A DNA stretch of 64,000 nt from Botryllus schlosseri (GCA_051294905.1 CM119383.1:11842001-11906000), one strand, 5' to 3'; counted from the stretch's first letter, positions 481 through 28,315 are shown. A program made the numbers and translations. Notes: generated by a model from the sequence alone, not told the origin.

Positions 481-3400
481 ATTTCACATCAACCTAAAAG
501 CAGGTCTGGAAGCCGACGCAGACATCGCTCTCCATTTCAATCCGAGATTTTCCCCAGAAAAGATCATCGTCAGGAATACTTATAGTAAAGGGCGATGGGG
601 TGTTGAAGAAAGGCGGATTTCGTCGTTTCCATTTAGCCTTGGGGAACACTTCGAGATGGTTATTTTGTGCCAGGAACATCAATTCAAGGTTTGTAAATAC
701 TACAGGTTTTCGACAATGTTATTGTTGCTGTAGAATTGAAGTAAGCCCTACACATCCACTAATTTGCGTTTTCGTTTCGCAGTCTATCAGTCATTGGATT
801 CATTTTCTCAGCACTGTGAATTTCTCAACGACCCACGTAAAAAAATAAACCGCATTGTCGTCAAATGTTTCCCACATGTAGAACTATCTCAAGTAGCACT
901 AATGTCGTCAATTTCTATTCAGTTCCAAGTAGAAGTAGTGATTCTCATCTCACGCTAAAACTGCTTCACCAACCAGCAAATGACGTACTCAAATAAGTAA
1001 TTTTAAAGAAGTAGATTGGGACGAGTATAGTCGCAGACTTTTTTGCATCGCCCAGTTGCCATTGGAATTTCTTCCGTGAAAGTGATGCTAAAATATCCAA
1101 ATACTACTTTCTACTTGACAAAATGTAAAACATAAAAGGTAAGCTTCAAACATTGTTGAAGTAAAAGTATAGTGTAGGCCCAAGTCATGTAGTTATACGA
1201 TAACCCGCATGAATACTTCAACTGTTTTATTGTCCCCCTCTGGTGATTTGGCATTCCTCAATTCAAGTCTTGTCACCGAAGTATAGGATTGATATATCCG
1301 ATTCTAAATCAATGTCTTGAATTCAGTTGACATCCGTATATACCATTCCTTAACAAACTCGGTTGGTGTACAAATTTCAAGTTCTTATTCAAACCAATGC
1401 CTGGCGCGATATTTCAGAGTGGTCCAATACCTGGCACGCGACTGGTAGTTACGAGGTGGCGAAGTCTTGTGACGTCAAAATTGTTCCCTATCGATGACGT
1501 CATCGTCGCACTAAAACGCACTTTACTACATGCCGCGTGCACGTACAGCGTTAAACCATTTGTGTGACGTTATAATACCGGCCCTGCCCTCATTGCCCTT
1601 ATTAAATGGAATCTTAAAACGGTACGACGGACCATCCGTCCGTCCGACGGAATGCATCGAACAAAAATCAGAATTTACGTCGCTGAGAATTTGGAGTTGC
1701 GTAAATGTTATTAACGCGCAATGAGCCGTGTGAGTAACGAAATACACCACGCACTCTGGCAAGTAGCACACGACAACTCTCGAATATGAGGTTTCAAGCA
1801 GACAATAATGATGATTACAAACGCGAAATCGCGCAGCCAATCAGCAATTGTCTCTTGCGGTTTCTGGCTTCGGGTTGAGTAGCTCGCATCGCGGCAATTG
1901 TTTGCAGATTAAAACAGCGATTTTGGCAGCACTATGGTGCATTTCCCGATTTACGTTCGCTAAGCATTTTTGGAGTACAGTGGTGTATATGCCGCAAATA
2001 GATATAGGAACAATATATAACGTCCTATTCGTATTTAATGTATCGACTATGGGCTAGAACAGAGATGGCCAACCTTTTTGCAATTCACGGCCGCATTCCT
2101 GGGCAGGGCATATTAGACGCCAAATATCCATATTAAACTGTCCTTGCCCATAACCGGTGAACTCCGGACTAATATACGTTTTCATATCGGCTTATTATAC
2201 GCACCAAAATCGACGACCGCCAGTACATACTAATTGAATTACGTGTTGACGGCCGCGCAAATTTCATTTCCACGACAGCAGGTTGGCCACCCCTGGGCTA
2301 CAATTAATTCCAGTTCCATCCACATGCCGCGATTTTATCAATAGAAATCGACTGTCCGCCAAATGATCAATAGTTTAAAATTCGATATTGTTGTTCTCGA
2401 AACGAGTACGTCCAGCAATCAAGTTTATCGGAATATAGAAGGTTCCCTGTTCAAACGAATCGAATAAATTCAGAGTTTGTGCCACCCAGAATCTCGTGAT
2501 GCATCAATATCTGACAATTGCATGGCATACTGCACGTTAATAACGAAAATAACACTTTGAAAATGACATTGTGGGACAATTCCAGAGTACGAATGTATCG
2601 AGCAGACAACAAGAAATATAGATGACGTCAAACGAGAAGCGTGTATTCTAATCAGTATCGCCATGAATGGGTTTTGAGTCTGACTCCGTATTAGTAGCTT
2701 TCGTCTCGACAATCGTTATCTCATTATATCGGTGTTTAAGCTGTATTGCTGCATTTCCCGAGTAATGTTACTGGCAAAGCCTTGTTAGAGAAACAAATAT
2801 GCGTAGTACTGAATTCCAATTTGCAGGTACTCACCAACACACCTTCCAATTTCGCGCTCCTAGTACCAAGACTATCACGAAGCTAGCTAGCTCAATAATG
2901 GTTTTGTAAACGAATATGGACGCACATAATTTTGATTTTAGAAAAGCAGAACGTCTATTTGAACGCGTGGTCGGGAGAGGAGATCTATGATGGTGCCGAG
3001 CGAGATAGTGTAATGGTTATGCGTCCGGCTTCTCGAGCGGTAGGTCGTGGGTTCGATCCCCGGCCGGGTCATACCAAAGACTCGAAAAATGGTATCCGCA
3101 GCTATCCTGCTAGGCGCTCAGCAATCACGGATAGCATGGAGGAGAAAAAAAAACGGGGGCGCAGACTAGATGACCTCATGGGGCCGTATCGCAACTCCGT
3201 CGCCAAAGCATCTCGATGGTGCAGGCGAGAAAGAATATCATATCTCTCTCTCTCTCTCTTCTCAGCACACCCTAGGCGCGTAGCCAGTCGAAAAATGAGC
3301 GGGATATGGATTTTTTTTCAAATTTACCAATATCGCAGCAATTCAATTCGGGTTAAGTACAAGTGTAAATGACGATCATATAATCTCTTCATGTTGACGA

Positions 3401-6400
3401 TTTTAGGCGTATGATAAGCTTGCTAAAGAGTCCGGAAGTGCTGTCAATTAGCGAGTACCTGATCTCTGGTGAACAATTAAATACGAGCGCGTATTCCGCA
3501 TCCTCGGCGACAGTTTTCCCAAATCAAAATGTTCGAACCTGATGGCACCGATTTCGAATGGTTCAGACCAGACATGGGGTGATTACTTCACGAATGTAAT
3601 CGATTGCGATTACTTGTGAATCCCGCGATTACGATTACGATTACAGCAAAATCAGGAAGTAGTCGATTACGATTACATTTCAAAAGTAATCGCGATTACT
3701 CACGATTACATTTGTTTTGCTTCTTAGAACTAATATATTGGAGATATTGGAAGACAATATAAGACTTGCGATGAAAATAAGGTCTATTGAGATAACAACT
3801 TTCTTTATAAATCATACGTCATTTGCTTGCTACGTCATAATGCACCCATTGCCCAACTCTATACAGGACCATTCGCCGCACCCAACAATTTGCATTCTTG
3901 CCAGGTCCGTAACTGCCACACCCCAAACTCCCCAATAGGACCGGGAGCGAGCTCTAAGGGGACTCAAAAGTAATTCGTAAATCAACATAAATTATAATAG
4001 AGTATTTTCATGAGAGTTAATTAACTTGAAAATTTTCTTCGAGCTTCGGGATTTAATGTCTTCTAAATCAATACTAGCCAGTTTTCAGGATTACCGGACC
4101 ACGACCTAACATCGACCTCGCCCTCCGCCACATGCCACCCCATTTTGTCGCTTGCATCTTATATTCTCTGCATTACTTTTCATTCAGTGTGCATGCCTCT
4201 TATTTACTTCGCCTAGGCTAAGGTGAGTGTCTGATCTTAATGGCTACTCCAAGTTGTTTCGACACCTTCCTATCTTTTCATTGTATCGCAGTCTTGTGAT
4301 GTTTTGAAACGATGAAAATATTAATAAACCTGACTGACTGACTGTCTCTAAATAGCTTGATTTTGAAATGCATACCTCTCCCCCTCAAGAAAAAAAGAAT
4401 GCATAATTTATAGGAATATGCATTTCGGTGGCCGTCATTACCCCGCCACGACAAGCTAAAAGACGTCTGCAATTTCGGCCAACATGCCACTCCACAAAGT
4501 GTGCTACCAAAGAATGACCTTAGCTCAAACTTTGGGTATGTGTCCATTGTCAGTAGCCGCGCTCTGTGGGCGTGACGAATAATCCAGTCCCTCCAATCTT
4601 AGCCCCAACAATGCAACTGCTATAGCAGGGGCACTCACAGAAGAATGAAGACATGACAATTTGTGTGTGCGTCTCACGAAAATTCTCTTTTAGTCTGCTA
4701 CGTTTGGGCGACTACAGTATCTTTTGATTATATAAAAGGCGGGAGGTCACGAATTAACAACATACTATAAAGTAATTATAACAACATACCAGATGCTATA
4801 ATTATGAATTACGTGCCCCCAGCTCTACCGGTAAATCTGAATGAATAACAATATAATGCAATTACCAATATTATGACGAAATTCACAACTTGAACTGACC
4901 ACCATGGGGCCCCAATACCCAGGGTTGTAATGACTCGAGTCGCGATTTTGTATTGACTCGACTTTAGCTCGAGTCATTTTGCATGACTCGAACCAAGCCA
5001 TATGACTCGATACTAGAACGGCCAAGACAGACATTCCATGTAACTTCGAAGAATAGTAAAGTTACCACATTATCTGTCTTTCGTCTATCATCATGCAGTC
5101 CTGGTACATGGAAATAGGGTCGTAAACTGTGAAAACTGATAAAAATTACTATATTATGAATACGATCTATTCTATGTCACTCGAGCAGAGTTGAAAAAAT
5201 TGGGTTGAACCAGATTGATCTGAAAACTGATCTTTGAACATAAAGACTTGGACTCGTAGTCGAGTCAAACACTATGACTTGGACTCGACCCTAGCTGACT
5301 TGGACTCGGACTTGACTCGGGGTGAATTGAAAATGACTTGACCTGACTCGAGTCAAAACTATAAGAGTGATATTGACTTGTGACTCGTAACATTGTGACA
5401 TGGTTACAACCCTACCAATACCAACGTTTGGAGTGGGGGACGAATTGCTGTTTTGGTCCTGATTGTACCTACAACCCACGCTAACATGGTGTATAAGCGA
5501 ATGGCTATGGCGACAGGTATAAATGTCGAGTGAAGAATTGTGAAATAACGATTGGCGCCCGTTTCAAGTAGAGTCATATGAGAATAAGGTAAAGTGAACC
5601 TAAAATTCTACCTTCCACTTAATACAGTCACTGCAAGGTGCCGTTACGAGAAACGGCAAAGAACGGCTCGGTTATGATATATATAAGCAGCTGTTGATTT
5701 TAGCCATCGTAATGTTTTATTTGACGAGTACAATATTTCAAATCTTCGTCCGGTGTACGTACAATACATACGTATGTAACAGTTATTTTAGACGATTGGA
5801 GTCGATTGTAGACTGCTACATTATTGTAAGGCTGCTCAGCGGTCTTGATGCACATCTTCCCAATTGCCGTGATATTTTGTTGGCAGTCGACATGATAACT
5901 TCACAATATTATCAAAGGTATTCAAATCTTGAACCCGATTCAAGTGTAGTGGAACGAGATAACACTCTTTCATCTTGTTCGCAAGGTCATTTAATGCACC
6001 AGCATCATCATATTTAATAGGAGGTGCTCTGATTAATTCATCAAGAAATTTTCGTGAAATAACAATCGGGTTACCATATTGTTCGTCCAAAATTTCCATC
6101 GCTTTAGCGTAGCCTTCAGTTAGTGGGTACATGGAACAATGCTGAATCAATTCTTTTGGTTTTCCGTCACAGTATTGTTGCAACAATGCTAGACGTTTTC
6201 CATTGTCAAATATCTTCTCTACAACATTTACTTGAAATGACTCTCTGAACTGCGCATATTGGGTGATGGAACCACTGAATTTCATAATTTCAATTTTTGG
6301 AACATTCATAGCAGAGGCTATTGCATTTGCCAAGTCAGTAGCAAAACATGTATTATTTACTGACATTGAAACTTGTGGTTGTACTGCAGGAGCAGATAGA

Positions 6401-9400
6401 ATAGGGATATCGTATTCTTTCGAGGCACATGCTTTGGACGGTGAACTGTTCATGATATAACTTCCAACTTCATGGTCCTCCTTTTGAGGAATTAAGCTCA
6501 TAGGATCGATTGGTGGAATGTCACTACTCATTGGAATGAAGGAATGTTTGATGTTACCTTCAGCTGTACTCTTGGATTTCGCAGTGGTATTCATCGGCAT
6601 CGACACTCCCCTAGTTTCTCTACTAATATATTCTTCATCAGCGTTTTCCCATATCTCTGCCTGCAAACATGCTGCTTCATATTTGTGTTGTAATTCCACA
6701 GCCCTTTGTTCGGCTTCTAATTCTCTTTGCTTGGTTTCTAATTCTCTTCGCCTGGTTTCTAGTTCAACCTTTTTTCGTAATTGGGATAATTCCAATTTTG
6801 CAAGTTCTCTCAAGGCAATAGCTTCTATCCGTCTTGTTGCAGTAGATGAATAACATAGTGATGAAAGACTAGATCCGTGTGATCTGTCAGATCTTTTGAT
6901 ATTAGTTGATCTCTTACACCATTCCTGAACGTCATCCTTCATATCTCCATACATCCAATCATTGATATGTAATTTGGCTTCTTGAAATGCCTTGACTTCA
7001 TTTTCATACTCAAGTTTGATCTTCACTGTCTGATCTCCATCTTCATGGAGAAGACTGACACGAATGTTCTTTGTACATGAATACTCATCAAAGACTTTGT
7101 CAATTAATCTTGATTTCGATATCACCAAGCTTCTATTTTCTTTATTAAGCATGAGATACTCCACTTCTAAATATAGCTGCTGTAGGTTCTTGACCATCAT
7201 TTGCAGCTTCATGATATCTGCATTGACATCTTGAGTCATCATGTGTTCTTGTTGCAAATTCATTGCACTTGTATTGGCAGCATGTGCCATCATGGGTTCT
7301 TTTTGCAAATTCATTGCACTTGTATTGGCAGCATGTGCCATCATGGTTTCTTGTTGCAAATTCATTGCACTTGTATTGGCAGCATGTGCCATCATGGGTT
7401 CTTGTTGCAAATTCATTGCACTTGTATTGGCAGCATGTGCCATCATGAGTTCTTGTTGCAAATTCATTGCACTTGCATTGACATCATGTGCCATCATGGG
7501 TTGTTGTTGCAAATTCATTGCACTTATATTGGCAGCATGTGTCATCATGTATTCTTCTTGGTCGAAAGTTGTTATTGTTAACTTTAATGTAACAGTTATT
7601 TTAGACGATTGGAGTCGATTGTAGACTGCTACATTATTGTAAGGCTGCTCAGTGGTCTTGATGCTAACACGTCCCTCTTGGCATCTTTATATCAGTCATT
7701 AAACGGTTTATGATATTTATTGGAAACGGTTAACAATAATTTAACTCGCTCTAAACGAAAAGAATATAAACAAATTAAAACACGATCCTTCGGGAACCAC
7801 ACATTTCCTGGGCCCCGACACCGAAAACATGTGCGGGGAAAACCCCGGCACGTGACTGCAGTTATTCACCCGTTACAACGTATACTACATAGATAGGCCT
7901 ACTGCTCGCCAAGCAGCAACGGTCAAACTGCGTTTAAATAAGCATAACCAAACATCAATACATAAGTTACTATTAGAAACTAGGCAGAGTGGTGATTATT
8001 ATCTTGCTGCGAGGTAGTGGCGTCTGGGGCGTATTGATAACCTGATATACGTCATGGCTTTTACACTGTTCTAACCATAGTGTCCTATATGGTGTCGACA
8101 CAGGCAAATCTCACGCCTCAGTGAAATTGTATCACGTCACAATTTCCATTTGGCTACAGGCAATTTGACGGTCATTTTTGACCGGCTTGCCGAGCATTAA
8201 ATTTGGTAAAACAGGTATCAATCGAAAGCTGACTCTGCACTGATTACGAAAATATAAATTTTATTCCGCTCGTGGTACTGGAACTCCCACAATCAGCCTC
8301 GAATTTTTGATTGTTATGGAGAGTGGCATTGGGACGCAACAATGCTGTCTGGCGAAACGAGAGAGTAGCTCAAGAGAAAAAGAGCCAGACAGCATTGTTC
8401 AGCATTGTTGCGTCCCAATGCCAATCTCCATAACAATCAAAAATTCGAGGCTGATTGTGGGAGTTCCAGGGCCACGAGCGGAATAAAATTTATATTTTCG
8501 TAATCAGTACAGAGTCAGCTTTCGATTGATACCCGTTTTACCAAATTTAATGCTCGGCAAGCCGGTCAAAAATGACCGTCAAATTGCCTGTAGCCAAATG
8601 GAAATTTTGACGTGATACAATTTCACTGAGACGTGAGATTTGCCTGTGTCGACACCATATAGGACACTATGGTTCTAACAATCACACAACAATGTCCATC
8701 GAATATATATTTACTACGTGTGGATACTTTATACGCAAGGACGAGCAAAGCTAATACTTCTGACGTAATAATAAGCAGTGGTGCTTGATAATCAACCGTT
8801 TGCGCTATCAATAACCTGGTAGAATATCTCTTCCTTGTTCACGAATGTTCGGTTATGTCATATTCATTGTACAAATAAAAAGTAATCGTTCTTTCACAAA
8901 GAAATCGATTACATATGTGAAGTAGTCGATTACGATTACGATTACTTTGGATTTTTTTCGAATGTAATCGATTGCGATTACGATTACTCGAAAATGCTGT
9001 AATCGTCGTAATCGATTACGATTACTAATCGCGATTACCCCATGTCTGGTTCAGACGTTTTACCTCTTTTAGAAGTCAAGCCATGATACACTTCTTCTGA
9101 TCGTTACGTTCAAGTATTAGCGGAAATCAATTACGCACGTTACAGTCTGTTTTCAGCGATTCGATGTTATTTAGTTTGGCGATGTCGCTCTTTAATCAAT
9201 ATGACAATCAGTGTAAACTCGACCGCATTGTCTTCAAACCAGCGAGAGATACGAGATCGAGACGCGATAGTTAGGCCAGTAATGATATATTTCGCACCAG
9301 GCCTATTAGCAGGGTTGCCATCGCCATGGACCCAAAAATAAGGACAGTCGAAAAATAAGATTAGCATTAATAGCGGTTTTGTACATACTTAGTATTTATA

Positions 9401-12400
9401 CGAGCTGTGGCATATCGCATTCCATACTTTTCGCAAGAAACAACCTGCTTTTGCAACTCCTTGTTAATAGAAAGTGCTTCATGGATCTCACGACAGCTGT
9501 GGTCTAAGTTTACCTTTACTCAGGGCCGAAACAGCACTTCGTTAGCCCCCCACAAAACACGTTGGTCTGGGGCCCTCATAGGGTGATAAACCGAACTTCT
9601 TCACCTCGTTTTGATTAGAGGCGTCAACCTAAATGGAAAATGGCTGTACATCAAGTTTAGGCAAAATCATTTTTTGAGCGTATGGAGCAAAAACTCCAGT
9701 AACAAACTCATTTGCGATGTTGGAATCGGGGATTATTGCTTTGAACAATTGCGATGTGCAATCGTTGTAGAGAAATGATTGCTGGTGTTTGACAGTATGG
9801 AATGCCCAGACATCCTCAGCAGCAGCTGCCTTGTAGCCTGTGGTCGTCGGTGCTGATCGACTTGTGAAAAATAATGCATCGACTGGCTCGAATTAATCAT
9901 TATGACACACGTCTTGTGTTTTGGGGTATCAATGCTAGTTGAAATAGCGATCTTTCCTACGGCCTCCAGGTTAATGTCACAATTGCAGATATTGCTATGT
10001 GCGAAACACTCGCCCTTCAAGCCTCATTTGATAGCTATGAATTCTCTCTCACAATCGTCACGAAAAACATTTTTACGGCTGCTCATTTTAACTAATGAGA
10101 TTTAGCCTTATTAGTAGTTAAAACTATATGTGCAATATAATTTAGATAAATTTATCAGTGATATATAACTTTACTACTTTTTAACCCACGTGTCGACTGC
10201 ACTGCGCCCTTTTCCAGTACGCTATAAATGCTGCCTTCCCACAGCTTATTCTGCTGTAGACTAGACAGCAGAAACCTAGTGTTGCTGTTTACTGCTAAAA
10301 TGACGTCCGCTGCGATAGCTTGGAACAGCCGAAACTGCTATACCGCCCACTGCCACAGCTATCTCATCACTTAGAAGTCAAATCCTGCGGTGTGTACGCC
10401 ACGGGAGTTCCTTTCATTTATGATGTCATAAAATCTCGACGCAAAAGCATAATTTTAGAATATTATGCAACACAGATACCAGAGCAATACGATCGAAGTT
10501 CTGCAGTTGTTGAAAGTAAGACAAAATAAGGACGCAAGTCGAAAAGAAGGACAATTCTTAGAAATAAGGACGGTTGAGTTTTCTAAGACGAGACCCTTAA
10601 AAATAAGGAGAAATCTTAGAAATAAGGACGGTATGGCAACCCTGCCTATTAGAGATGCTATCGTGTAGGCCAGCGATGATATCGTGCACAACAGGCAGAA
10701 GCCGCCAATGAAGATGCGATTGTGCAGTGCATGTTCAGTGTTCAGTCAAGCGATGATATCGTGTGAACTGGGCCTATTGCAAATGCGATTGTTAATAATG
10801 TTCAAGCCTGCGGAATCAGGCCTGTTCGAGATGCGATAAATCAGGCTAGCGACGATTGCCACGCGCACGGGAATGACTGACCTAATTTCGTGACCATCTC
10901 AGCGGGATATCATCATACGCGCGCTAATTGGCACACGCGCGTATCGAAAACGAAGACGTCTCCAACGAGGTCGCGTCGATTCGCCTGATTACTAATTACT
11001 GGTCAGTGGTCACAAATCACTTGAGCATTTGAGCATTTCGTACGAGGTGGCCGCCACCTCGTAAATATTGTGACGCGTAAGTCGGCGCCTTTCCACTCTT
11101 GCCGCGTAAGTCGGCGCCTTATTTCCACTCTTGGCGAATCACGACAAATTCGGTAATTCATCAACGCTTGTTAACTTATTCCTATCGGTACTCATGGAAT
11201 CAAGTTTCCAATCTATCTGTGTGATTTTATAAAGCAATGTTGGCTAATATACGAATTCGAGTGCCACTGTGGTGTAGGTATTGGTAATAGCTAATAGGTA
11301 TATGCGGGGAGAATTAGGCTACCCAACGGTTACAGGACCGTATCTAAAACAGCATATTCCTCCCTCAAGCGAGATAGTGTAATGGTGATGCTCCCGGCTT
11401 CTCGATCGGCAGGTTGTGGGTTCGATCCGCGGGGACGGGTCGTATCAAAGACTCGTAAATTGGTATCCGCTGCTATCCTGCTAGGCGAATAGCAACCACA
11501 GATAGCGTGGAGGAGGAAAATGGGGGTACAGACTAGGTGACCTTACGGTCCTATCGCATCTCCGTCGTCAAATCATCTCAATGGTGCAGGCGAAAAAGAA
11601 TATCATCTCTCCCTCTCTCTCTCTCTCTCTCTCTCATATATTTCGAAGTTCCAGCAAAGTGATCCGTAAGTTTTCGAATACAATCGAGCCATAGCTCAAA
11701 ATTATTCTAGCACTGGCTTGATAACCCGATATAGTATAGGCCCTCTCTCTACCAAATTGGTCGCAATTCGTTTGTGTATTCACGATTCCAACAATTCGTC
11801 AATCAAGTCTATGCCAAGAGAAAGCATTTGTGTATCATTTGAATATCGCATATCAATACTTGTTCTCCCGCCCGCCATGCTCATAGTTTTGGACCACCCT
11901 GAGATACTTGGACGCACGTATGATGAGCGTGAGCTAATTGTACCGATCATTATCGTGAGTAAAGGTTACTGTGAACGGATGCCATGTACTGGAGTATGAA
12001 CATCGGATACCTGTTCGATCGGTGAAGTATCTGATAGTTGAAGACGCTGTCGTTTTGACGACGGTGCGCAGAAGTGTGGAATTTCCATCGAAGGTATTCT
12101 ATTTCCCATTAGACCAGTGGTTCCCAACCTGTGGTACGCGTACTGGTGGTACGCACTGGTGGTACGCGAAGGTCTTCCAGGTGGTACGCGAGTAGATTAT
12201 GTTTTTTTTTCGACCGAGGGAAGTTATTAGTTCAGGTGGGGTTGATTTTGAATTTTTTGAAGTTTTTTGACTAGTGGTGAAAAACAATTCCATGCATCTC
12301 ATCAACCCGGGCTGATAGTGCCTATAGTTTAATAGAATTTGTTATTGCTAGGACGATTTTCTTTTACAAAATTGAAGCCTTAAGTCAAAAAATAGTCAAA

Positions 12401-18400: not shown

Positions 18401-18429
18401 CAGACATATCTTGCGTGAAATTCAAGTAA
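481..18429 (+). CDS. Tandem-repeat (bi-CRD) galectin, paralog A, 5'-partial. Exons in window: 481-688, 11965-12093, 14771-14862, 16942-17113, 18280-18429 (stop). Earlier exons presumably lie upstream of the window.
   Basis: All modelled introns are GT-AG with consistent phases. N-CRD: FHINLKAG..IALHFNPRF..IVRNT..GRWGVEERR..ILCQEHQFK|VTVNGCHVLEYEHRIP. C-CRD: GVPLSATVPF..KIVINGIP..|FTFDL..YMHMDSRF..IVRNS..KWGGEERQ..|ITIHVEEQSFRVVLNG..FNHR..*. Exon sizes 208 and 92 equal those of paralog B. Confidence 0.88.
2060..2295. mobile_element. Small hAT-type MITE
   Basis: CAGAGATGGCCAACC / GGTTGGCCACCCCTG. Flanks GGCTAGAA / GGCTACAA (7/8). Confidence 0.8.
2995..3260 (+). mobile_element. tRNA-derived SINE, family 1 (central domain resembles the MetaSINE Meta domain), (CT)n tail
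   Basis: A-box-like TAGTGTAATGG, B-box GGGTTCGATCCC, then GGTCATACCAAAGACTCGAAAAATGGTA...CCTGCTAGGCGCTCAGCA, ending in TCTC repeats. Second copy at 11367-11636. Confidence 0.8.
4920..5414. mobile_element. hAT-type MITE (GACTCGAG-rich family) nested in 3569-9048
   Basis: TIR CAGGGTTGTAA / TTACAACCCTA. Perfect TSD CCAATACC at 4912-4919 and 5415-5422. Related GACTCGAGTC-rich sequence occurs near 17130-17600, 34940-35000 and 35230-35290. Confidence 0.88.
5836..7548 (-). CDS. Bel/Pao gag-like ORF (DUF1759-type domain) with N-terminal 17-aa repeats, 570 aa, C-terminally truncated into the LTR remnant
   Basis: PKIEIMKFSGSITQYAQFRESF..KRLALLQQYCDGKPKELIQHC..GYAKAMEILDEQYGNP..ALNDLANKMKEC..DLNTFDNIVKLSCRLP, typical of Bel/Pao gag, preceded by a coiled-coil-like segment. 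Confidence 0.85.
   Translation of the reverse strand: MMTHAANISAMNLQQQPMMAHDVNASAMNLQQELMMAHAANTSAMNLQQEPMMAHAANTSAMNLQQETMMAHAANTSAMNLQKEPMMAHAANTSAMNLQQEHMMTQDVNADIMKLQMMVKNLQQLYLEVEYLMLNKENRSLVISKSRLIDKVFDEYSCTKNIRVSLLHEDGDQTVKIKLEYENEVKAFQEAKLHINDWMYGDMKDDVQEWCKRSTNIKRSDRSHGSSLSSLCYSSTATRRIEAIALRELAKLELSQLRKKVELETRRRELETKQRELEAEQRAVELQHKYEAACLQAEIWENADEEYISRETRGVSMPMNTTAKSKSTAEGNIKHSFIPMSSDIPPIDPMSLIPQKEDHEVGSYIMNSSPSKACASKEYDIPILSAPAVQPQVSMSVNNTCFATDLANAIASAMNVPKIEIMKFSGSITQYAQFRESFQVNVVEKIFDNGKRLALLQQYCDGKPKELIQHCSMYPLTEGYAKAMEILDEQYGNPIVISRKFLDELIRAPPIKYDDAGALNDLANKMKECYLVPLHLNRVQDLNTFDNIVKLSCRLPTKYHGNWEDVHQDR
7237..7548 (-). repeat. 51-bp tandem repeat, about 6 copies, encoding MMAHAANTSAMNLQQEP-like units
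   Basis: Unit catcatgggttcttgttgcaaattcattgcacttgtattggcagcatgtgc. The 51-nt period was checked (7288 to 7339). Confidence 0.95.
8076..8671. mobile_element. Foldback-like MITE (long near-perfect inverted arms) nested in 3569-9048
   Basis: CATAGTGTCCTATATGGTGTCGACAC... mirrored at the right end, arms about 270 bp. TSD GTTCTAAC at 8068-8075 and 8672-8679. A diverged single arm lies at about 52985-53227. Confidence 0.9.
9310..10644 (-). mobile_element. hAT element derivative carrying a decayed transposase fragment (about 9600-10020, minus strand)
   Basis: TIR CAGGGTTGCCAT / ATGGCAACCCTG. Perfect TSD CCTATTAG at 9302-9309 and 10645-10652. The minus strand reads ICNCDINL..KH (BED-like) and AAAEDVWAFHTVKHQQSFLYNDCTSQLFK..PDSNIA..FSI*VDASN, with stops and frameshifts. 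Confidence 0.8.
11367..11636 (+). mobile_element. tRNA-derived SINE, family 1, second copy
   Basis: Colinear with 2995-3260 over its whole length, including the CT tail. Confidence 0.8.
12115..13322. mobile_element. hAT (Charlie/Buster-like) MITE containing a second nested element
   Basis: CAGTGGTTCCCAACC / GGTTGGGAACCACTG. Perfect TSD CATTAGAC at 12107-12114 and 13323-13330. Confidence 0.9.
12349..13145 (+). mobile_element. Nested hAT derivative with a transposase C-terminal remnant (12692-12865)
   Basis: TAGGACG..CTTTTAC / GTAAAAGACGCCCTA. Flanks GTTATTGC / GTTATTAC (7/8). The 57-codon frame MKQHGVSPAVYAQLQCCQTTTNAVERSFSILGKLLSKDGRFLPKNVGKYLRWYYNKF* contains the hAT dimerisation-type VERSFS motif. 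Confidence 0.75.
15117..16137. mobile_element. hAT-type non-autonomous element with GTGAAC/GTTCAC subterminal repeats
   Basis: TAGGGATGGTGTGAAC / GTTCACACCATCCCTA. Perfect TSD CTATATAC at 15109-15116 and 16138-16145. Confidence 0.9.
17608..18185. mobile_element. Foldback/MITE palindrome (about 580 bp) in the last intron of galectin A
   Basis: TAGATAACTAACCTACGGATA... mirrored by ...TATCCGTAGGTTAGTTATCTA. Arms are about 270 bp and diverged. The terminal TA could be a TA TSD. Confidence 0.85.
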
Positions 18430-21400
18430 CGATCGCACAGGCCGCAGGACTTATCTGTCTCGCATGATTTTGGTGATAGTCAACGTGTATTGAACTTGTT
18501 TCCGTTCCTACATACCCACTGATATCGTTGCAAGCTATACTTCATTCGAACAACGCAGTTTATGTGACGTGGTTCTGTTCCCCATACTTCCGACAACGTA
18601 TACCGAGGCGGTCACAGTTGTTCGTACTCACTATCTCATGCCATTACAATTTATGTCGTTATTTTTTTCAATCAAATTCAATCAGAAGCAGATGTGGTCA
18701 AAGTGGTCATCGTTGCTATGCTCAATTAGAAGTAGAAGAAACGATGTAAATTTCTATACTCAATTTCGAGTAGAAGTAGTAAGTTCAAAGGCGGCTACTT
18801 TCGGAATTGCAACATATCTCTTAGCGACTATCCCTCATTCGCCTCAAGTCGGTCAATCGCCACACTCAAGTCATCCAGTCTCCGCTGACAGTTTTCGAAT
18901 TTCATAATAGGCGCAATTTCCAACAGTATAATCTGTTACCGTCTTACATTATTTGCATCGCCCTGTTGCTTATGGCGATTTCACTCGATGATGATCATCT
19001 GTCTCTTTATATATTACTTTATGCTTGGCAAGAATTAAAACTTAACAAATAAGCTTCGAAAACAGCTCAAGTGGAAAAAGTAAAATAGCCTGAAGACGTA
19101 GCCACTTAATTGAGTTTGAGTATGTACTGGAAGAATAGGCCAATCCTGCTTGCATACTGTAAAAAATGTTTCAGTTCTTCGTTACTGACCAGTGACCCCC
19201 TCGATAGGCCTACATATCTGATCTTTTATGTTTTTAGCTTCCGCTAATGTGTAAACTGTACATTTTCGTAATCGCTTTCCACATATGCGCGGATATCACT
19301 CATACGCAGTAAACCGATATTTCTGTCATCTGATGAATGGAGATTGCTACTACTGCTGATGGAGATTGCATTCGGCAGTGAAATAGGCGGTTGATTGCGA
19401 GTAGGCTATTCGCAAAAGGGCAGGCACTATAAAATGGGATGAAATGAAGTCGTGATATCAGAAATGCAAATCACACTCCAAAGAAGTTTGGCACTAGACC
19501 GGTGCCATATTCCTCTCTGTTGGATATCCTGTCTGCCGAGTTTCCATATTGATGTCAAAGATCTAGCTAGATTGAAAAATAACCCTGTGCGAGTTTACAT
19601 ACTAACTTCTCGTATAAGTTAGCTTAGCCTACACGACATTTGTAGGTTACTATGCGAAGGCATCAGGCGCATCATATCCCTTAGTATTAGCGGTCAGGAT
19701 TCGGTGTCGCATGTATTTCAAAACCCGGTAGTCGATACAAATTGCTGCTAATACGCGAGTTTTGGTCGCTTGGTGTCAGCTGGGACATGCTCAAGCTCAC
19801 GGGTGTTTGGTATTTGGTTATTTACGTGAGTGAGATCACCGCCGCGCATGTTTACTTTAGTCTGGGTGAGCTCTGGTTCGTTTCAGTGGTGAGGAAGCAA
19901 CATAATTTATTCTCGTTAGCAGGCAAGATAGGTCTTCAGCGCTAAAACAATTCGCTATGTGCGTAGTAGGAAGTTCGAACTGATTTGACGGTACCGCCCT
20001 GACTGAAGTACTAATAACGCCGCTACTCTACTATTGGTCACCGTACTTATCGGATTGTTACGATTCATATTCCCAATTCATGTGTACTGTGTAGCCTTTG
20101 TCAGCTCGAATTGTGTAGCACTAGAGCTCTCATATTCACAGAACTCCTACTCCATGCACAATACACATATATAGCCTAATCTCTATCTGTTGCACGTGGA
20201 CGTTTTCAGTAAATATTTGTTACTGAGCGTCGTACCACAAATTTATGGATCACCAATCACGCAGTCTTGTAAATTGTCAGCTGAATGAGTGGATGGTGAT
20301 TGGTGATAGCTCGCACATGGAAATGTGAACTGAACAATGTAGACTTCAGAAAATGCGAAAAGCATTATTGGACCGGGCTCTACATGGTATATGCGGTGTA
20401 CGATTTATTTTATAATAGGCTACATACAGCATACAGAGCGGAAGTATAGCCATAGCCGAGCGATTTTCCAAAGCAATTGATCCTGATCAGTAACATATAG
20501 GCCCAAATGCTATTCAGTGCCTTCTGGCTATTCCTTGCTCACTGTGACTACTTAATCATGCGAATCGCTGTCGTCCTATAGAAACCGCGGTGACGCTGTA
20601 TAATATCAATAATTACATGTACGGTCGAATCCGCTTGATTCGAGAATGGAGCAAAAGTAAAAATTGCTCGTAGAAAAACGTACGTTATTCGGACAATTCC
20701 CCGCTTAATTCGGACACAGGTTCGCAATTCCTATATTACTAGATTATGACACAGTAAACAGTACTTCGTTCGTTTTAACGCCATATACAACCGCATTATG
20801 AGTGATTATGATTGTGAAACTGTGACGATTAATGCTGCAGCAACCGACAATGAACTCATATAAGGCCGTGCCAGCCTCAGTCGCTTTTACTTTAGCACAA
20901 CTATGTCCATCACATTCTAAAACAGAATGGTAGAGAAAAGTTTAGCAAAAAAAGTAAAATTATTCACTAAAGTAAACGAATAAAATTGTAGACTTTTGGC
21001 GTCTACTGTTGAAGAAAATGCGGCATCATCAGTTTTTCAAACTTGACTCTGCGCATTCTTTCAGCCATGGCCATTTCGCAAACGTACGGGTACACAGAAG
21101 CATTGTATTTTGTGGATTTAGCCTTCAGTTAGCGTTGTTCGCTTTACTTAGGGTTACCAATTACCATCAATGTTTCCTCTAATTTTTCACGAGTCTGCGC
21201 GCAGTCACCAACGCACTGCGCGGTCCCTTGAACAACAGTGCGTAACGACTAGAGAAGAAAAGAAAAAGATCATCACTTCGGCTTATTTGTGTGCAGATAC
21301 CGTGTCAGCACGCAGCTTACCCTTAGAGGTAACAGTGCTTACCACACGTCCTCCTTTAGGAAGATTTTCCCTCATTTTTCAGGTTTTTGAAAATGTACTC

Positions 21401-22090
21401 CGAGGACGCCTAAATGTCCTCCTTTTTGGCAATTCGTCTGCCTATACAGCTGTTACAGCTAGGATAATGGACAGATTCGACTGAAAATGGGCATAAATGA
21501 CGCTAAATAGAAAACGCGGGCGTTGGAGCGGGAAATTCGGCTACCTTGCTTTTAATTCATACTGTTTCGTCGTGGTGCTTTTATCTAGTGGACATACCGT
21601 TTCAGCCCAGGCTTAGCATTGTTTTTGAAGAATTACTGTAGAATTTTAACCGTATATATGTGTGTGCGATACACAGTAATACAGTGTCTGCGGAATTGTT
21701 CGGTATCGAAATACCATACAACAACAACAACCCGATGGTGCAACTCTTGTGAGTTTTATGCGATAAGTGCTAATTACTGCAGTATCGCAGCTGCAACGGC
21801 ACGAAGTGTATTTTTGATGCGTTATCTGCATTTACGCATAACAATGAAATGAACAATTAATTTTCTACTCAATTTGGACGAAGCCGATTCTGCGTTTAAT
21901 GTAGCCAAAAGCGAGCTGAATCAAGTGAAAGTGTCAGAATGATGCGGAGTCGACTATCTACAGAACAATATAATTAAAATCGACTACCTGTCGTCTATGC
22001 AATGGGACTGCTCGCAGTAATACATGCACTCCAAAATTTAGATATATATAATTATATAGATATAGATCAGTCGGTGTGATATCGAAGAAT

Positions 22091-25000
22091 ATGAATAGTC
22101 CGATCTACAACCCGGTACAGTATAATGTTTCTATCTCAATGTATATGTTCGTAGCAATGCATATGGGATGATTGAATATCATAGAGATCATATAGATAGA
22201 GGCTTCATTTGTGTGACATGACGCTTAAAAGATCTGTTTCCATGTCCATACTTTCCTATACCTCAGCTCAGATTGCAACCGGAAGCGTCATCATTTTGTT
22301 CTAGGTCGTGATTCCATCACATATCATCAGAGGCGTTCAGTTCAGTAACGAAGTTGGCTACTTCTATTTTTTGGTGTACTCGTAGGTTGTGTTTTACGAC
22401 TACTTCCACTTCTGCTTTCTTTTTGAAAATCTACTTACTTTTTATCCGTTGTAAGTAGATAGTAGGTTCGGGGAACGTTTCCATCCGTTTTATGGGTCTA
22501 ATTATATCGGTAGAGTGTCATATTGCGGTATAGTCCCGAAGATGCACCCGTCAATTCCTACAAGCCACCTCCGGATAACCGCTAAAATATGTGACTGCTT
22601 GACCAATGACCATGCCTGTAATTTCAAACTACTTGCTTGAGTAATTTTTAAACCTTCCTTTTCTAATTTACACATGTTACAACAGGCTACACAGAGATCT
22701 ACTAGTATCGTAAATATCGTTATTTCAACGTACAGGACGTTTAATACTTATTCGTGATCCCGAGCATGCAACTTTAACCATTGAGATTGCGTTGTGAGGT
22801 CAAATATATCTTGTTTCGTGAGAGAGAGAGAGAGAGTGAGTGAGAGAGTCTAAATTTTCATCCAACCAAAATAGATAAAAAACAGGCGACAATGATGGTG
22901 GTTCAGAAAATATGCATGCACATCTGCACAGTATTCGGTATCAGATAGGATCAATACAACCGTGAAGGTCAACTAGTCTGATCACACCCACATCAAATAT
23001 GTATACTTGACTCTATACAGTCTGGTTGTAAAAATGTTAGTTAAAAAGGAAAATAAAAAAGAAAGGAAACAATGGTGGCTAATGATCAATGAAGCAATGT
23101 CTGGGTAAGGTAGGACAACAATGTTAATATAACATTGTCGGCTAACATTTTGGAAACATAAACCATGCATCGTATCATGTTCAATGTTTCGTTTTTCACA
23201 ACACCATTTTCACAATAGGTGGTGCCATTCACTACTGGACTCACTGCCATGCAGCCACAACTCATGATATGCGTGGATGGGACACCTACCGGGGCAAGGT
23301 GCGTACAACAGGACTATTTCAATAGTAGTCGCTTCAAAGCAATATGCAAATACAGCAATGCAGAACCGTTTAACTTTCTCTTCCATTTCTGTATTGCAGA
23401 TTTCACATCAATTTTCATACTGGTCCAAGCGAACACGACGATGTGGCGTTTCACTTCAACCCCAGATTTAATCCCCGAAAGGAAGTTGTGCGAAATACGA
23501 GAACTAGTGGAACGTGGCAAGCTTGGGATAAACACCCCGTTGGCTTCCCATTCCAAATGGGAAAACCGTTCAAAGTTATCATTCTTTGTCAACCTCATCA
23601 ATTCAAGGCACGTATAAACGCAGATAGTTTTTCACAGTCGTTCGTACAATACGTCGGCGTGAATCTGTTCAGTTTCAACTTTCAAGCGTCCTGCTCACAA
23701 CAAACTCCTTCAAAATCTACACGAAGCTGCGACTTCGTAATATAGATGTATCATCCGCTGAGATTGCTAGATTGGATGGACATTCCATAGATTTGGTGGA
23801 GAATATTTCTGTCACTTCATTTTGCAATTAAATGTTCACAGGTAGCAGTCAACGGCCGTCATCTTCTCGAATACCAGCACCGCCTGAGTTATCAATCGAT
23901 TCGATATATGCGCATAGAGGGAGATGTAGCTCTGTCTCTGGTGCGCACCGATTTCGAATCAATTCCACCACCAGCGCCTGTCCCAACCCCGGTATGCTAC
24001 TGAATCACATTTATATTTGTTTATTGAGCAAATAATTTAATTTACCAGTATTCGACGGTGACATAATATATATTAGCCGATGGTCCATTTGTATGGTTTC
24101 ATAAGCCATAATAGTCGTCCATATTCAAGACAAAATTACAACGGGATAATGTAACTCTCAGGTAGCACTGTACCACCGGAAAGGTAAATTAATTCAAGAG
24201 GTTGGCGATAACGTATTGATGAAAACTCTGAAGTATCTGCATTATGTAGAAGTATTAGTCCCAGCTGGGGAAAATCAAATTTGGTTTAGCATGAAGATCG
24301 TTTACATTTATGGCGTAACTGATAAATTGGAACCTGAATCCGTGCAGTAGGCTACGACATAAATTATGATCCACCATAAGGGCCTCTTTTTTACTGAAGT
24401 GCATGTACCACAAGACCATGTAAATACAGACATATTTGAACATCCAAACTTTTGTTCTGTACAGTACACGGTTGATCGTGGAAACACAGAAAGCCGGTGC
24501 TGGCGAAGTTAATATTTAACTATTCTTTCTAAACAACTCCTCGCTACGATTCTCTACCACCGGCTAACAAATTAATCAATCATTAATCGACGGGAAAATA
24601 AATCAATACGATTCGCCAGAGGAATATATAGGAGTCATGAAAAGCAAATATCATATAATATTTTGTGAAGACAACAGCCGAAAGCTTTATTCTCGTTTCG
24701 TGAAATTGGCGCGATTAAAGATACCTCCAGAGATACTGAATCACCTGGGAAACATAATTACATTCCTGTATTAGTGTAAATTGGAAAAGAATTCTGTGAA
24801 ACATCGCTATTCTGTACAGCAGTGGCGGGCAACATAAGGCCCGTAACGTGATTTTGAGCTGTTCCCAGCCTGTTTCCGGTCTTACAGGATAATGTGAGCC
24901 GCGGCCGCAGTCTGTCGCAATCCCCACCACTTTATTAGGCCTACTTCTCAAATTATAGTGACTGTGGGTTATTCTTTAGTTCCTTGTCTTCTTTGATTCA

Positions 25001-28000
25001 TTGTTTCGGTTTTAGTCACGTGACAATCATGACTTCCCATTTTTCCTACGGCGTCTTATGCCTTAATGCCTCAAGCCGGAAACATAGATCAAAGATTCAA
25101 AGTGAAATTTGGGCTGGTGGAATTTTTAAAGGCAAAACGGAGACAAATAATAGTTTTTGATCGGTATTCTAGTTTAGGTCTTTGATTTCTTTAAGTTTAC
25201 ACCAAATACGATATATTCCTTCTATACGTGGATAGATAGAATTCCGGAATCCGGCCCGCCAAATCGTTTTCGTACAGTGAACACTATGTACAATTGTACA
25301 TTGTACAGTGTGCACGATATCTACAGCAGTTCGCGTTTGTTTGCGCCCGGCCTGAGTAAGCAATTTAAGAATGGCTTAAGGCTTAATGCTTGCCGACTAG
25401 GAAATAGTCGAGAAAACTCGTGCGATCTTCGGGAATCCCCTAACTAATGACCATCCTCCGCATGAACTTTTGTGACTTGTGATCAGCTTCAATATGCCAG
25501 TCAGTGATCCGCGACCATGGAGAGATGCGTCACTGTTGAATGATTATTGATATCCATATGGATAATTTATTTAGATATGGATACTTTCACCATCCTGGTC
25601 GTACCCCAAGAGTCGAAATTGGGTCCATGTTTAGCCCAGTTTCATGGTAAAGCATATAGCAACAAAACAGATTTGGGTCGAGTTATCTTTATCGCCACCG
25701 CGTTTCCAAAATGAAGTGGAACTACCCCATTATATACCGAGAGATTTTTTTATTTAGGATTTAGTGCAAACCCTTAACGTGCCATTCCCAAACATCCGAG
25801 GTCGCAAGATAACCGTGACAGGAATACCGCAAAATCGACGTCCTCACAGGTATGCATTTACCAGTATAGTCTCTAAATCGTTTGCTGTGCTAGCAATGAC
25901 AAGCAGGACCGAAACAGCACTTCATCAGCCCCCCCCCCAAAAAAAACGTCGGTCTTGGGCCCCCCATTAAGAGGAAAACTTTCACCAACTTATATAAGTT
26001 AGTTGACCCTAATTGATAAAAACATATTTTGATATATTTACCGGAAATGTTCGTGTTGACAAAATGACAAAAACAAGTCATCACTAATAATTTTAGGGCC
26101 CTTCGAGCTCGCCCTCCCAATTGAGGGGTTTGGGGTGCGGCAGTTACGGCCCCGATGACAAGTATTTATGTTATAGGCTAATTATTTGCATGATAATTTG
26201 GTATCATAATTTAGGGTAATTATGATTAGATTCGAGCAGCTATGCAACGATTTCCACATCTTTGATACTTTCCCATCGTAAGATTATCGTGCCAGACCAC
26301 AAAAAAAGCAACGATCATAACTAATAGGTGCTCTCTCGTCACCTAACTGTGTATAAGGATAATTTAACACCGTCCGTAAATTTCTACTCGATTACAAGTA
26401 TAGGAGTACCACTTTTAAAGACATGTCAAAACTTCTTCGAGAGGAAAAAGAAAATGAAGGTCAGAAAAGCACTAATGCAAGTGACTTTGTTGATGGGTCG
26501 CATAGTTGTAGAAGTTGATCGCAGGTGACTACATCTGAAAATACGGGGTTCATCTTACGCAAAATGATCGATGACAATGAAAAGAGGCGCAATATATTTG
26601 AAAATATATTCAGTTGCCATGATACAGGGGTTCTTTTGGCCAGTTTCCATGGCATTTAAACTCGTGCAAGTGATGCAAGCATATGCCAAAAATATTTTCT
26701 ATACTATACAAAATCCAAATTGTAAAAAGCAAGTAGTTTACCCTAGAAATGCGTTAAGTAAAAATGGAAGTAGTCTAAAAACATCGACACTAGAGTAAGT
26801 GGTATAAGTGAGCAAAACGTACTTGAGTACTCCGCAGAAGAACAAGTACTGATACACGACTATAATCTATAAGCTAATAAAGCACATAGATTTTACTCTT
26901 TTTAACATGAATATGATTCTTACTTATAGAATCGGCAGGCTACATCCCACTCATGCCTACAATATTTTACGTCGAAAGTTCCACTGACTGAATTTTTGTT
27001 CAGGTTTTCAATCAACTTCAGAACTGGACCAGGGGGCGATATATTCTTCCATTTTAACGTCCGTTTCGATGAGAGACAGATCGTGCGGAACGCCCAGTTC
27101 AGTGGTGCATGGGGACATGAGGAAAGGGGATTGTCAGTCCCGTTTCCGTTCCAATACGGCGTGCCATACCAGGTTCAATTTTTTATATTGATTTTCGGAA
27201 TTAGATCTTTGAAATCGCCATTTTCTACTATCAAACGTCTTGCTCATATTACAAATGATGGGTATCAAATATAGTAATCTGACGTGGAACAGATACTTTA
27301 ATCCAGCGATTCCTCACCTATGTTCGACCGAACCCCGGAGATTCAGTTAGTCAGTTTTAGGGGCTCGGTGATATTGTTCACCCAACTACTAAGATTCGTG
27401 ATGTCACGCTCTAGCAAGACGCATTGTTCACCAAAATTCTATATTCGACATCAACGCCTCGTTATTTTCCGCCACGGCCCTAGTTCTGAACAATGCCAAT
27501 TTACATAGTTGATGGCGATTTTCAGGAAGTTCCCCAATGCCATGGTCGGATTATAATTTACATTTTCGAAATCAGTCCGATTAGTGTTATCAGATCGTTT
27601 TATGACACTAATCAGTGAATGCCACGTCATATATATATTCAAATTTCTTGTCTCGTATCATTAACTTTCGTAGGCTGCACCGCAACTGGCTGGTTCGGTA
27701 CATAAGGGCTCTCGACTAAGACTGGTGTTAGTAAGTAGTTCCACGAAGTAGATTTGGTAGAGGAGTCGCATATACTTTTAGCAGTTATTATGATCTGTCC
27801 TATGTCCAAATTGCAGGGGGCCGTTTCGCCACTTGCACCAAATGACTAATTACATTGTGCAATTACCGAGCATATGTCAAGTAGCCTACCCGTGATACAG
27901 GGGTTATACATCGCCAAGTTGTCATGACAATTTCACTCATAAAAAGTTTTGCTAACATATCACAAAATCTTTTTCTACTTTACAAAATGCAAGTTGTACG

Positions 28001-28315
28001 TATATTTGCTGGAAATATCTTTAAAGTAGAATTAGAAGTAGTCTGAGTAAGTAGGCAAGACCTACTTCAGTATTTTTTTAAATGGAATTACTTCGATTTA
28101 CTTGCTCTCATGTACGTACCTAATGAAACGAACTTGCAGAATTCATAATTCTTTCCATCTTCTCTCAGATAACGATTCACGTTGACCCAGGAGTATTCCG
28201 AGCGGAACTCAACGGAATGGCTATATGCGCGTTCTCCCACCGAAAGAGACCGCTGACGTTGATACGCCAGATTGAGGTCGTTGGGGCCACTTCCGTGACA
28301 AGCTCTTCATTTTAA
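22091..28315 (+). CDS. Tandem-repeat (bi-CRD) galectin, paralog B, 289 aa. Exons 22091-22114, 23219-23298, 23400-23607, 23842-23991, 25758-25849, 27004-27172, 28169-28315.
   Basis: The 870-nt spliced ORF reads MNSPIYNP|VVPFTTG..|FHINF..VAFHFNPRF..VVRNT..TWQAWDK..|VAVNGRHLLEYQHRL..PPPAPVPTP|DLVQTLNVPF..|FSINF..FFHFNVRF..IVRNA..AWGHEER..|ITIHVD..NG..FSHRK..*. One donor is GC (23608). The start exon is inferred from the typical galectin PIYNP motif. Confidence 0.9.

Follow-up and report, generated by a model that had tools for sequence, protein, structure and literature searches.

The question raised by this locus was whether two neighbouring galectin genes of the ascidian Botryllus schlosseri have each lost the canonical sugar-contacting residues of a different domain. 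We analysed 64,000 nucleotides (GCA_051294905.1 CM119383.1:11842001-11906000, here called the window), whose plus strand carries all of gene B and all of gene A except its first two exons. Both genes code for proteins with two carbohydrate recognition domains (CRDs), one N-terminal (N-CRD) and one C-terminal (C-CRD). The original prediction, made from the sequence of the window, described a tandem pair of two-CRD genes in which each copy keeps a single canonical CRD, in opposite domains; the tandem arrangement was confirmed, as two separate genes on the plus strand. We consider it rather probable that these are two intact ascidian tandem-repeat galectins with complementary derived changes at contact positions, each with one classical site and with the other domain kept for another partner.

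The Pfam profile PF00337 (Gal-bind_lectin; curated cut-off 22.1 bits) was run on the window and on the whole 495.5-Mb assembly, in which the window is C13:11842001-11906000. Both scans gave identical places: four plus-strand matches near 480, 16950, 23450 and 27000, plus downstream exons, all above the cut-off. The middle exons alone scored 74.3 (A N-CRD), 43.7 (A C-CRD), 57.2 (B N-CRD) and 61 bits (B C-CRD), scores by which the four CRDs are assigned to the galectin family, and a scan of the window with the motif HxxxR...RN...W returned exactly four stretches, all on the plus strand. The seven contact positions, equivalent to H44/N46/R48/N61/W68/E71/R73 of galectin-1, were read by alignment to the CRD profile. 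The N-CRD of A and the C-CRD of B were fully canonical, both with the signature HNRNWER (7/7). The C-CRD of A read HDRNWER (6/7), with Asp for Asn at the N46 position (HMDSR) and WGGEER retained. The N-CRD of B read HNRNWWK (5/7), with Trp for Glu at E71 and Lys for Arg at R73 in the motif WQAWDK, the remaining His, Asn, Arg, Asn and Trp being retained. All four motifs were exactly as originally described.

Reads and contigs from other data sets were compared with the assembly over positions 18000-23999. These were one run of raw RNA-seq reads (X23), two sets of contigs presumed to come from RNA (X15 and X16), and a further set (X5) that covers introns and intergenic DNA evenly and was therefore read as DNA from another sample. 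WQAWDK was kept in X23, in one of the presumed RNA contig sets and in the DNA contigs of the other sample. The possibility that this motif is an assembly error or a private allele, raised together with the original prediction, was rejected on finding it in these three data sets. The only difference within the WQAWDK codons was synonymous (23520 A>G); this refers to the best-supported differences, and one difference of the X15 contig and some of the X5 contig fall outside that set, so that full identity of the motif is not proven. HMDSR is single-copy in the assembly and differs from HFNPR in three residues, for which reasons a base-calling slip seems unlikely.

The closest public proteins were ascidian: the Styela clava 'galectin-9-like' protein P0151 (292 aa) and the unnamed transcripts P0057, P0152 and P0204, the last of these from SRR32906209. 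Identity of A and B to these four was 42-55% overall and at most 59% in any single CRD, and all eight of their CRDs read HNRNWER. By this comparison the group ancestor is shown to have had all seven contact residues in both CRDs, and since neither CRD departs from the canonical set in any of these nearest relatives, the Asp in the C-CRD of A and the Trp and Lys in the N-CRD of B are derived in this lineage. Representative and word-index protein searches found no close orthologue of A or B in which conservation of the Asp and the Trp could be followed, the best overall identity being the 42-55% given above.

In the tree, A, B and P0204 formed a clade (support 92/91), with the Styela group as its sister. 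A was paired with P0204 (93/90) in the best tree, which would put the duplication before the split from the species of P0204, but a sister relationship of A and B was not rejected by an approximately unbiased (AU) test (p = 0.12). A and B are the only co-orthologues of P0204 and of Styela clava 'galectin-9-like' in the genome. P0204 has no separate locus there, so that no copy of the subfamily that is canonical at both sites is left in it.

Gene models were built from homology (including tblastn and the profile scan), splice signals and reading frame. Gene A codes for 284 aa and gene B for 289 aa, each in seven coding exons on the plus strand; B spans 22091-28315, and exons 1 and 2 of A precede the window by 9.7 kb and 7.8 kb. 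The interval first proposed for the pair, 481-28315, ends correctly at the final base of the B stop codon; its left end proved to be the start of exon 3 of A and not of the gene. The exons were the following.

Gene A exon 1, L002:307-333, outside the window: codes for MTTPPIYNP.
Gene A exon 2, L002:2090-2166, outside the window.
Gene A exon 3, 481-688, plus strand: 208 nt, long middle exon of the N-CRD, with HFNPR (533-547), VRNT and WGVEER (596-613); PF00337 74.3 bits.
Gene A exon 4, 11965-12093, plus strand: last exon of the N-CRD and very short linker (VTVNGCHVLEYEHR...RRSVEFPSK), from tblastn with B exon 4 and P0057.
Gene A exon 5, 14771-14862, plus strand: first exon of the C-CRD (GVPLSATVPFSNLKGHKIVINGIPLDQEPR), from tblastn with P0057.
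Gene A exon 6, 16942-17113, plus strand: 172 nt, short middle exon of the C-CRD, with HMDSR (16991-17005), VRNS and WGGEER; PF00337 43.7 bits.
Gene A exon 7, 18280-18429, plus strand: last exon of the C-CRD, with stop codon TAA at 18427-18429.
Gene B exon 1, 22091-22114, plus strand: ATG, codes for MNSPIYNP, from the profile scan and an RNA joint.
Gene B exon 2, 23219-23298, plus strand: first strands of the N-CRD (VVPFTTGLTAMQPQLMICVDGTPTGA), from an RNA joint.
Gene B exon 3, 23400-23607, plus strand: 208 nt, long middle exon of the N-CRD, with HFNPR (23452-23466), VRNT and WQAWDK (23515-23532); PF00337 57.2 bits.
Gene B exon 4, 23842-23991, plus strand: last exon of the N-CRD and proline-rich linker, from RNA joints.
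Gene B exon 5, 25758-25849, plus strand: first exon of the C-CRD (DLVQTLNVPFPNIRGRKITVTGIPQNRRPH), from tblastn with P0057.
Gene B exon 6, 27004-27172, plus strand: 169 nt, short middle exon of the C-CRD, with HFNVR (27050-27064), VRNA and WGHEER (27110-27127); PF00337 61 bits.
Gene B exon 7, 28169-28315, plus strand: last exon of the C-CRD, with stop codon TAA at 28313-28315.

The exon plan and the intron phases were identical in both genes (27/77/208/129/92/172/150 nt in A and 24/80/208/150/92/169/147 nt in B), and the introns were GT-AG throughout, save intron 3 of B, which is GC-AG. The reading frames were complete, that of A being open for 284 codons across seven exons. Galectins of the chordate tandem-repeat type have no signal peptide (leaderless secretion); in A and B the first CRD strand stands at the very N-terminus (MTTPPIYNPVIPF and MNSPIYNPVVPF), as it does in their relatives. 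Each CRD is coded by three exons, with middle exons of 208 nt in the two N-CRDs and of 172 and 169 nt in the C-CRDs of A and B. In chordate tandem-repeat galectins the middle exon is longer in the N-CRD than in the C-CRD, as marked in a review of galectin evolution (PMC10343441). A and B fit this type: two CRDs, three exons each, and a longer middle exon in the first CRD.

Some particulars of A should be mentioned. Its introns are long (8.3 and 11.3 kb), and the acceptor of exon 4 has no pyrimidine tract. The linker between its two domains (12070-12093 and 14771-14790) has about 10 residues (RRSVEFPSKG), shorter than that of B and 11-14 residues shorter than that of P0204, and would restrict the reach between the two CRDs. 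An open frame that extends exon 3 upstream from an ATG at 353 (353-480) was judged a chance one, in view of the strong acceptor at 479-480 and of a homologous upstream exon 2 whose splice phase matches; this frame codes for LPGISFTIAAFSSLY, in which the spacing equals that of the PGFMVFINGTPNGG strand in relatives. On the minus strand of the 11-kb intron, at 5836-7548, a 570-aa open frame matches DUF1759, a gag-like domain that belongs to retrotransposons of the BEL/Pao type. The 5' part of the frame is an array (7237-7560) of a 51-bp tandem repeat in 6.4 copies, coding for a 17-aa repeat.

Both genes were represented in RNA. For A, all of X23, X15 and X16 cover exon 7 and about 1 kb of 3' untranslated region (3'UTR; 18280 to about 19300), with depth over 18200-19399, and none of the three had any cover over 19400-20999. 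Contigs of X15 and X16 start at the exon-7 acceptor and the loose end of X16 equals the end of exon 6, letter for letter, from which it follows that A is expressed and spliced. One RNA contig carries 712 nt before exon 7, where 705 nt would be expected, a length which hints that exons 1-6 of A are joined. For B, joints were found from 22114 to 23219 (X15), from 23298 to 23400 (six reads of X23, and X15) and from 23607 to 23842 (13 reads of X23 and one contig of X15), and at a loose end at 23992 the letters past 23991 match the start of exon 5, giving the exon 4-5 joint. Intron 3 of B (23608-23841) has a GC donor (aag/gcacgt); a GT donor at 23612 was ruled out, the RNA joint fitting the GC donor at 23608 only. 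Given the end of the A 3'UTR, the RNA gap at 19400-20999 and the spliced joints that B has of its own, A and B are two separate transcription units, both expressed and spliced. The presence of spliced, polyadenylation-length transcripts in three RNA data sets rules out A as an unexpressed pseudogene, and with open frames and spliced RNA for both genes the claim that they are intact stood.

Two other features were seen in these data. A loose end of X23 at 23218 continues upstream in letters that agree with exon 1 of B in the assembly in the last ~10 bases only (agreement 0.72); an alternative first exon could account for this, as could an allele that diverges here or a mixture. An X15 contig uses the exon 1 of the assembly. 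Contig depth was very high at 18000-18200 (A intron 6), 21000-21600 (the spacer between A and B) and 22800-23200 (B intron 1), from 50,000 to more than 200,000 in X5 and high in the RNA runs too, and these segments look like high-copy repeats.

The RNA evidence also bears on whether the locus might be one galectin gene holding all four CRDs. Four-CRD galectin genes occur in some bivalves, and the four CRDs found here share one strand within 28 kb. Such a gene is nevertheless extremely improbable here and we rejected it: a stop codon directly follows the second CRD, about 1 kb of 3'UTR comes after it and then 1.6 kb without RNA, B has its own ATG exon, spliced to exon 2 in RNA, and each half aligns end to end with full-length proteins of 289-292 aa.

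Constraint on the altered domains was gauged by relative-rate counts and polymorphism in place of the per-domain ratio of non-synonymous to synonymous rates (dN/dS), since synonymous sites would saturate at about 50% protein identity. In exons 2-4 of B, which code for its N-CRD, 10 of the 12 best-supported differences were synonymous, while the other two replaced Ser by Gly and Ala by Thr. On the assumption that random changes are non-synonymous in three quarters of cases, the probability of such a result is about 4e-5 by our own arithmetic on the best-supported differences only. The synonymous excess strongly indicates that the altered N-CRD of B is under purifying selection. In exon 7 of A, one of two such differences was non-synonymous. 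By relative-rate counts A had 40-45 unique changes against 19-21 in P0204 (about twofold; p 0.003-0.006). Its altered C-CRD had 24-27 against 6-9 in the canonical C-CRD of B (3-4 times as many), the slowest domain of all, and the altered N-CRD of B had 19-20 against 9-12 in the N-CRD of P0204. The asymmetry between altered and canonical CRDs goes in the expected direction and is modest.

How unusual the pattern is was judged from 1,034 aligned CRDs of roughly 400 galectins, a biased sample that is rich in vertebrate galectin-4 and -9. The full seven-residue signature was present in 500 of the 1,034 and about half depart from it; the signature thus defines the classical site, not the galectin family. 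Asp occupied the Asn position in 37 CRDs, usually as HFDVR, and HDRNWER was the fifth commonest signature (18/1,034). Within two-CRD proteins the Asp fell in the C-CRD in 21 of 22 cases, mostly from molluscs, brachiopods and similar animals; a literature search for natural HFDVR/HFDAR motifs gave nothing relevant. Trp at the Glu position was found in the N-CRD of B only (1/1,034), and it is the sole real oddity of the pair. Both CRDs were canonical in 149 of the 297 two-CRD galectins, one in 99 and none in 49, and of 12 other CRD middle exons of this genome, located on C2, C4, C7 and C14, 8 do not show the signature. Against these counts the mirror image does not stand out statistically: a two-CRD galectin with exactly one canonical CRD is common, and given two such paralogues the chance of a mirror arrangement is roughly even. 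Taken by itself, the locus is an ordinary instance of diversification in the galectin family. As to the rest of the family in this genome, at least 12 further CRD middle exons lie at four other loci (L003-L012; C2:29.27 Mb, C4:24.05 Mb, C7:21.6-21.86 Mb and C14:2.23 Mb), with non-canonical examples such as HARKWPT, FNRNWEH and HNIYCER, and the C2 cluster seems to hold long-middle-exon CRDs only.

In this lineage one contact residue has changed in the C-CRD of A (Asn to Asp) and two have changed in the N-CRD of B (Glu to Trp and Arg to Lys). What the two proteins do may be proposed as follows. In solved galectins the residues concerned form hydrogen bonds with galactose or N-acetylglucosamine (GlcNAc), and in galectin structures the sugar contacts include the Glu and the Arg of the WGxExR motif. 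The N46D mutant of galectin-1 is without glycan (lactose) binding (10.1101/2024.01.03.574113). For these reasons each protein probably retains one classical lactose/N-acetyllactosamine (LacNAc) site, A through its N-CRD and B through its C-CRD; we infer the loss of sugar binding in the altered CRDs by analogy with the galectin-1 point mutants. The other domain would bind something different or nothing at all, and has probably been retained to serve either a changed glycan or a partner that is not a glycan; the proteins would act as hetero-functional adaptors, not as symmetric beta-galactoside cross-linkers. Several points weigh against this proposal. The sugar-binding status of all four CRDs is a prediction from sequence, and HMDSR was read in the assembly sequence alone. 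RNA junction support for A is limited to exons 6-7, and the length of the contig with 712 nt before exon 7 would fit a transcript that begins inside the window as well. Acceleration of A affects both domains, not the altered C-CRD alone, and whole-domain identity to the relatives is about equal for altered and canonical CRDs. Lys at the last Arg position is common (158/1,034), and Asp, being recurrent in natural C-CRDs, may support binding in its native context.

The last of these points leads to the most serious alternative. The frequency of His-x-Asp-x-Arg (37 of 1,034 CRDs) and its near confinement to C-CRDs in two-CRD proteins (21/22) argue for a maintained variant site, and suggest that the site is possibly shifted rather than retired. 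Both altered CRDs might then still bind glycans with a shifted fine specificity, the proteins being bivalent lectins that underwent the ordinary tuning of a fast-evolving immune lectin family. This is possible, and we hold it to be clearly less likely than the adaptor proposal. It would agree with the retention of HxDxR in many invertebrate C-CRDs, with purifying selection on the N-CRD of B, with the five contact residues kept there (His, Asn, Arg, Asn and Trp) and the six of seven kept in the C-CRD of A, and with the departure of half of the surveyed CRDs from the signature; against this, N46D abolishes lactose binding in galectin-1, and a bulky Trp in place of the sugar-contacting Glu is absent from the remaining 1,033 CRDs, so that binding by such a domain is without precedent. 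More doubtful is a domain-level split that followed the tandem duplication, with the N-site left to A and the C-site to B and a new selected ligand for each freed domain, the Trp of B making an aromatic site that would take a protein partner or some ligand other than lactose. It is improbable, in our judgement, that A is merely drifting under relaxed constraint after the duplication, redundant with B and heading for loss, with the Asn-to-Asp change as one symptom. Its excess of unique changes over P0204, which extends to both domains, would be expected of a drifting gene, and so would its very long introns (one with the retrotransposon gag-like open reading frame), the weak acceptor of exon 4, the shortened linker and the non-synonymous difference among the two in exon 7; a drifting gene is difficult to reconcile with a 284-codon frame open over seven exons, a fully canonical N-CRD and spliced, polyadenylation-length transcripts in three RNA data sets.

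Galectins serve ascidians, the closest invertebrate relatives of vertebrates, as lectins of innate immunity. The pair constitutes a clean natural experiment, with expressed paralogues that carry complementary single-domain changes and canonical relatives for comparison, and its four domains would allow a direct comparison of how far the textbook seven residues predict binding. The CRD survey gives a context for such motifs in any genome, half of the 1,034 CRDs being non-canonical and Asp being recurrent in C-CRDs.

Among known systems, A and B resemble Styela clava 'galectin-9-like' P0151 and the transcripts P0057, P0152 and P0204 in size (284-292 aa), two-CRD layout and short linker; the match begins at the N-terminal NP-VP strand and extends as far as the C-terminus, and all belong to one clade within the tunicate galectins. 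They differ from these four, which have HNRNWER in both CRDs, by the Asp in the C-CRD of A and the Trp and Lys in the N-CRD of B. The tandem-repeat galectins of Ciona intestinalis (CiLgals-a/-b; P0341, P0149) are also ascidian two-CRD galectins and, like A and B, are off-signature in one or both CRDs (HNRNWDR and HNQNWER in P0341, HNRNWEK and HNRNWER in P0149), but they stand on a separate, distant branch of the tree and other residues are affected. Some tandem-repeat galectins of C. intestinalis sit in tandem on one chromosome (PMC10343441). The N46D mutant of human galectin-1, without lactose binding, shares with the C-CRD of A the change of Asn to Asp at the same contact position; it differs in being an engineered single-CRD prototype galectin, whereas natural HxDxR motifs recur in C-CRDs. 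In mammalian GRIFIN, LGALSL and LGALSL2 the galectin fold has been kept under selection with a changed galactose-binding motif (PMC10343441); those proteins are single-domain, whereas in A and B a canonical domain accompanies the altered one in the same polypeptide.

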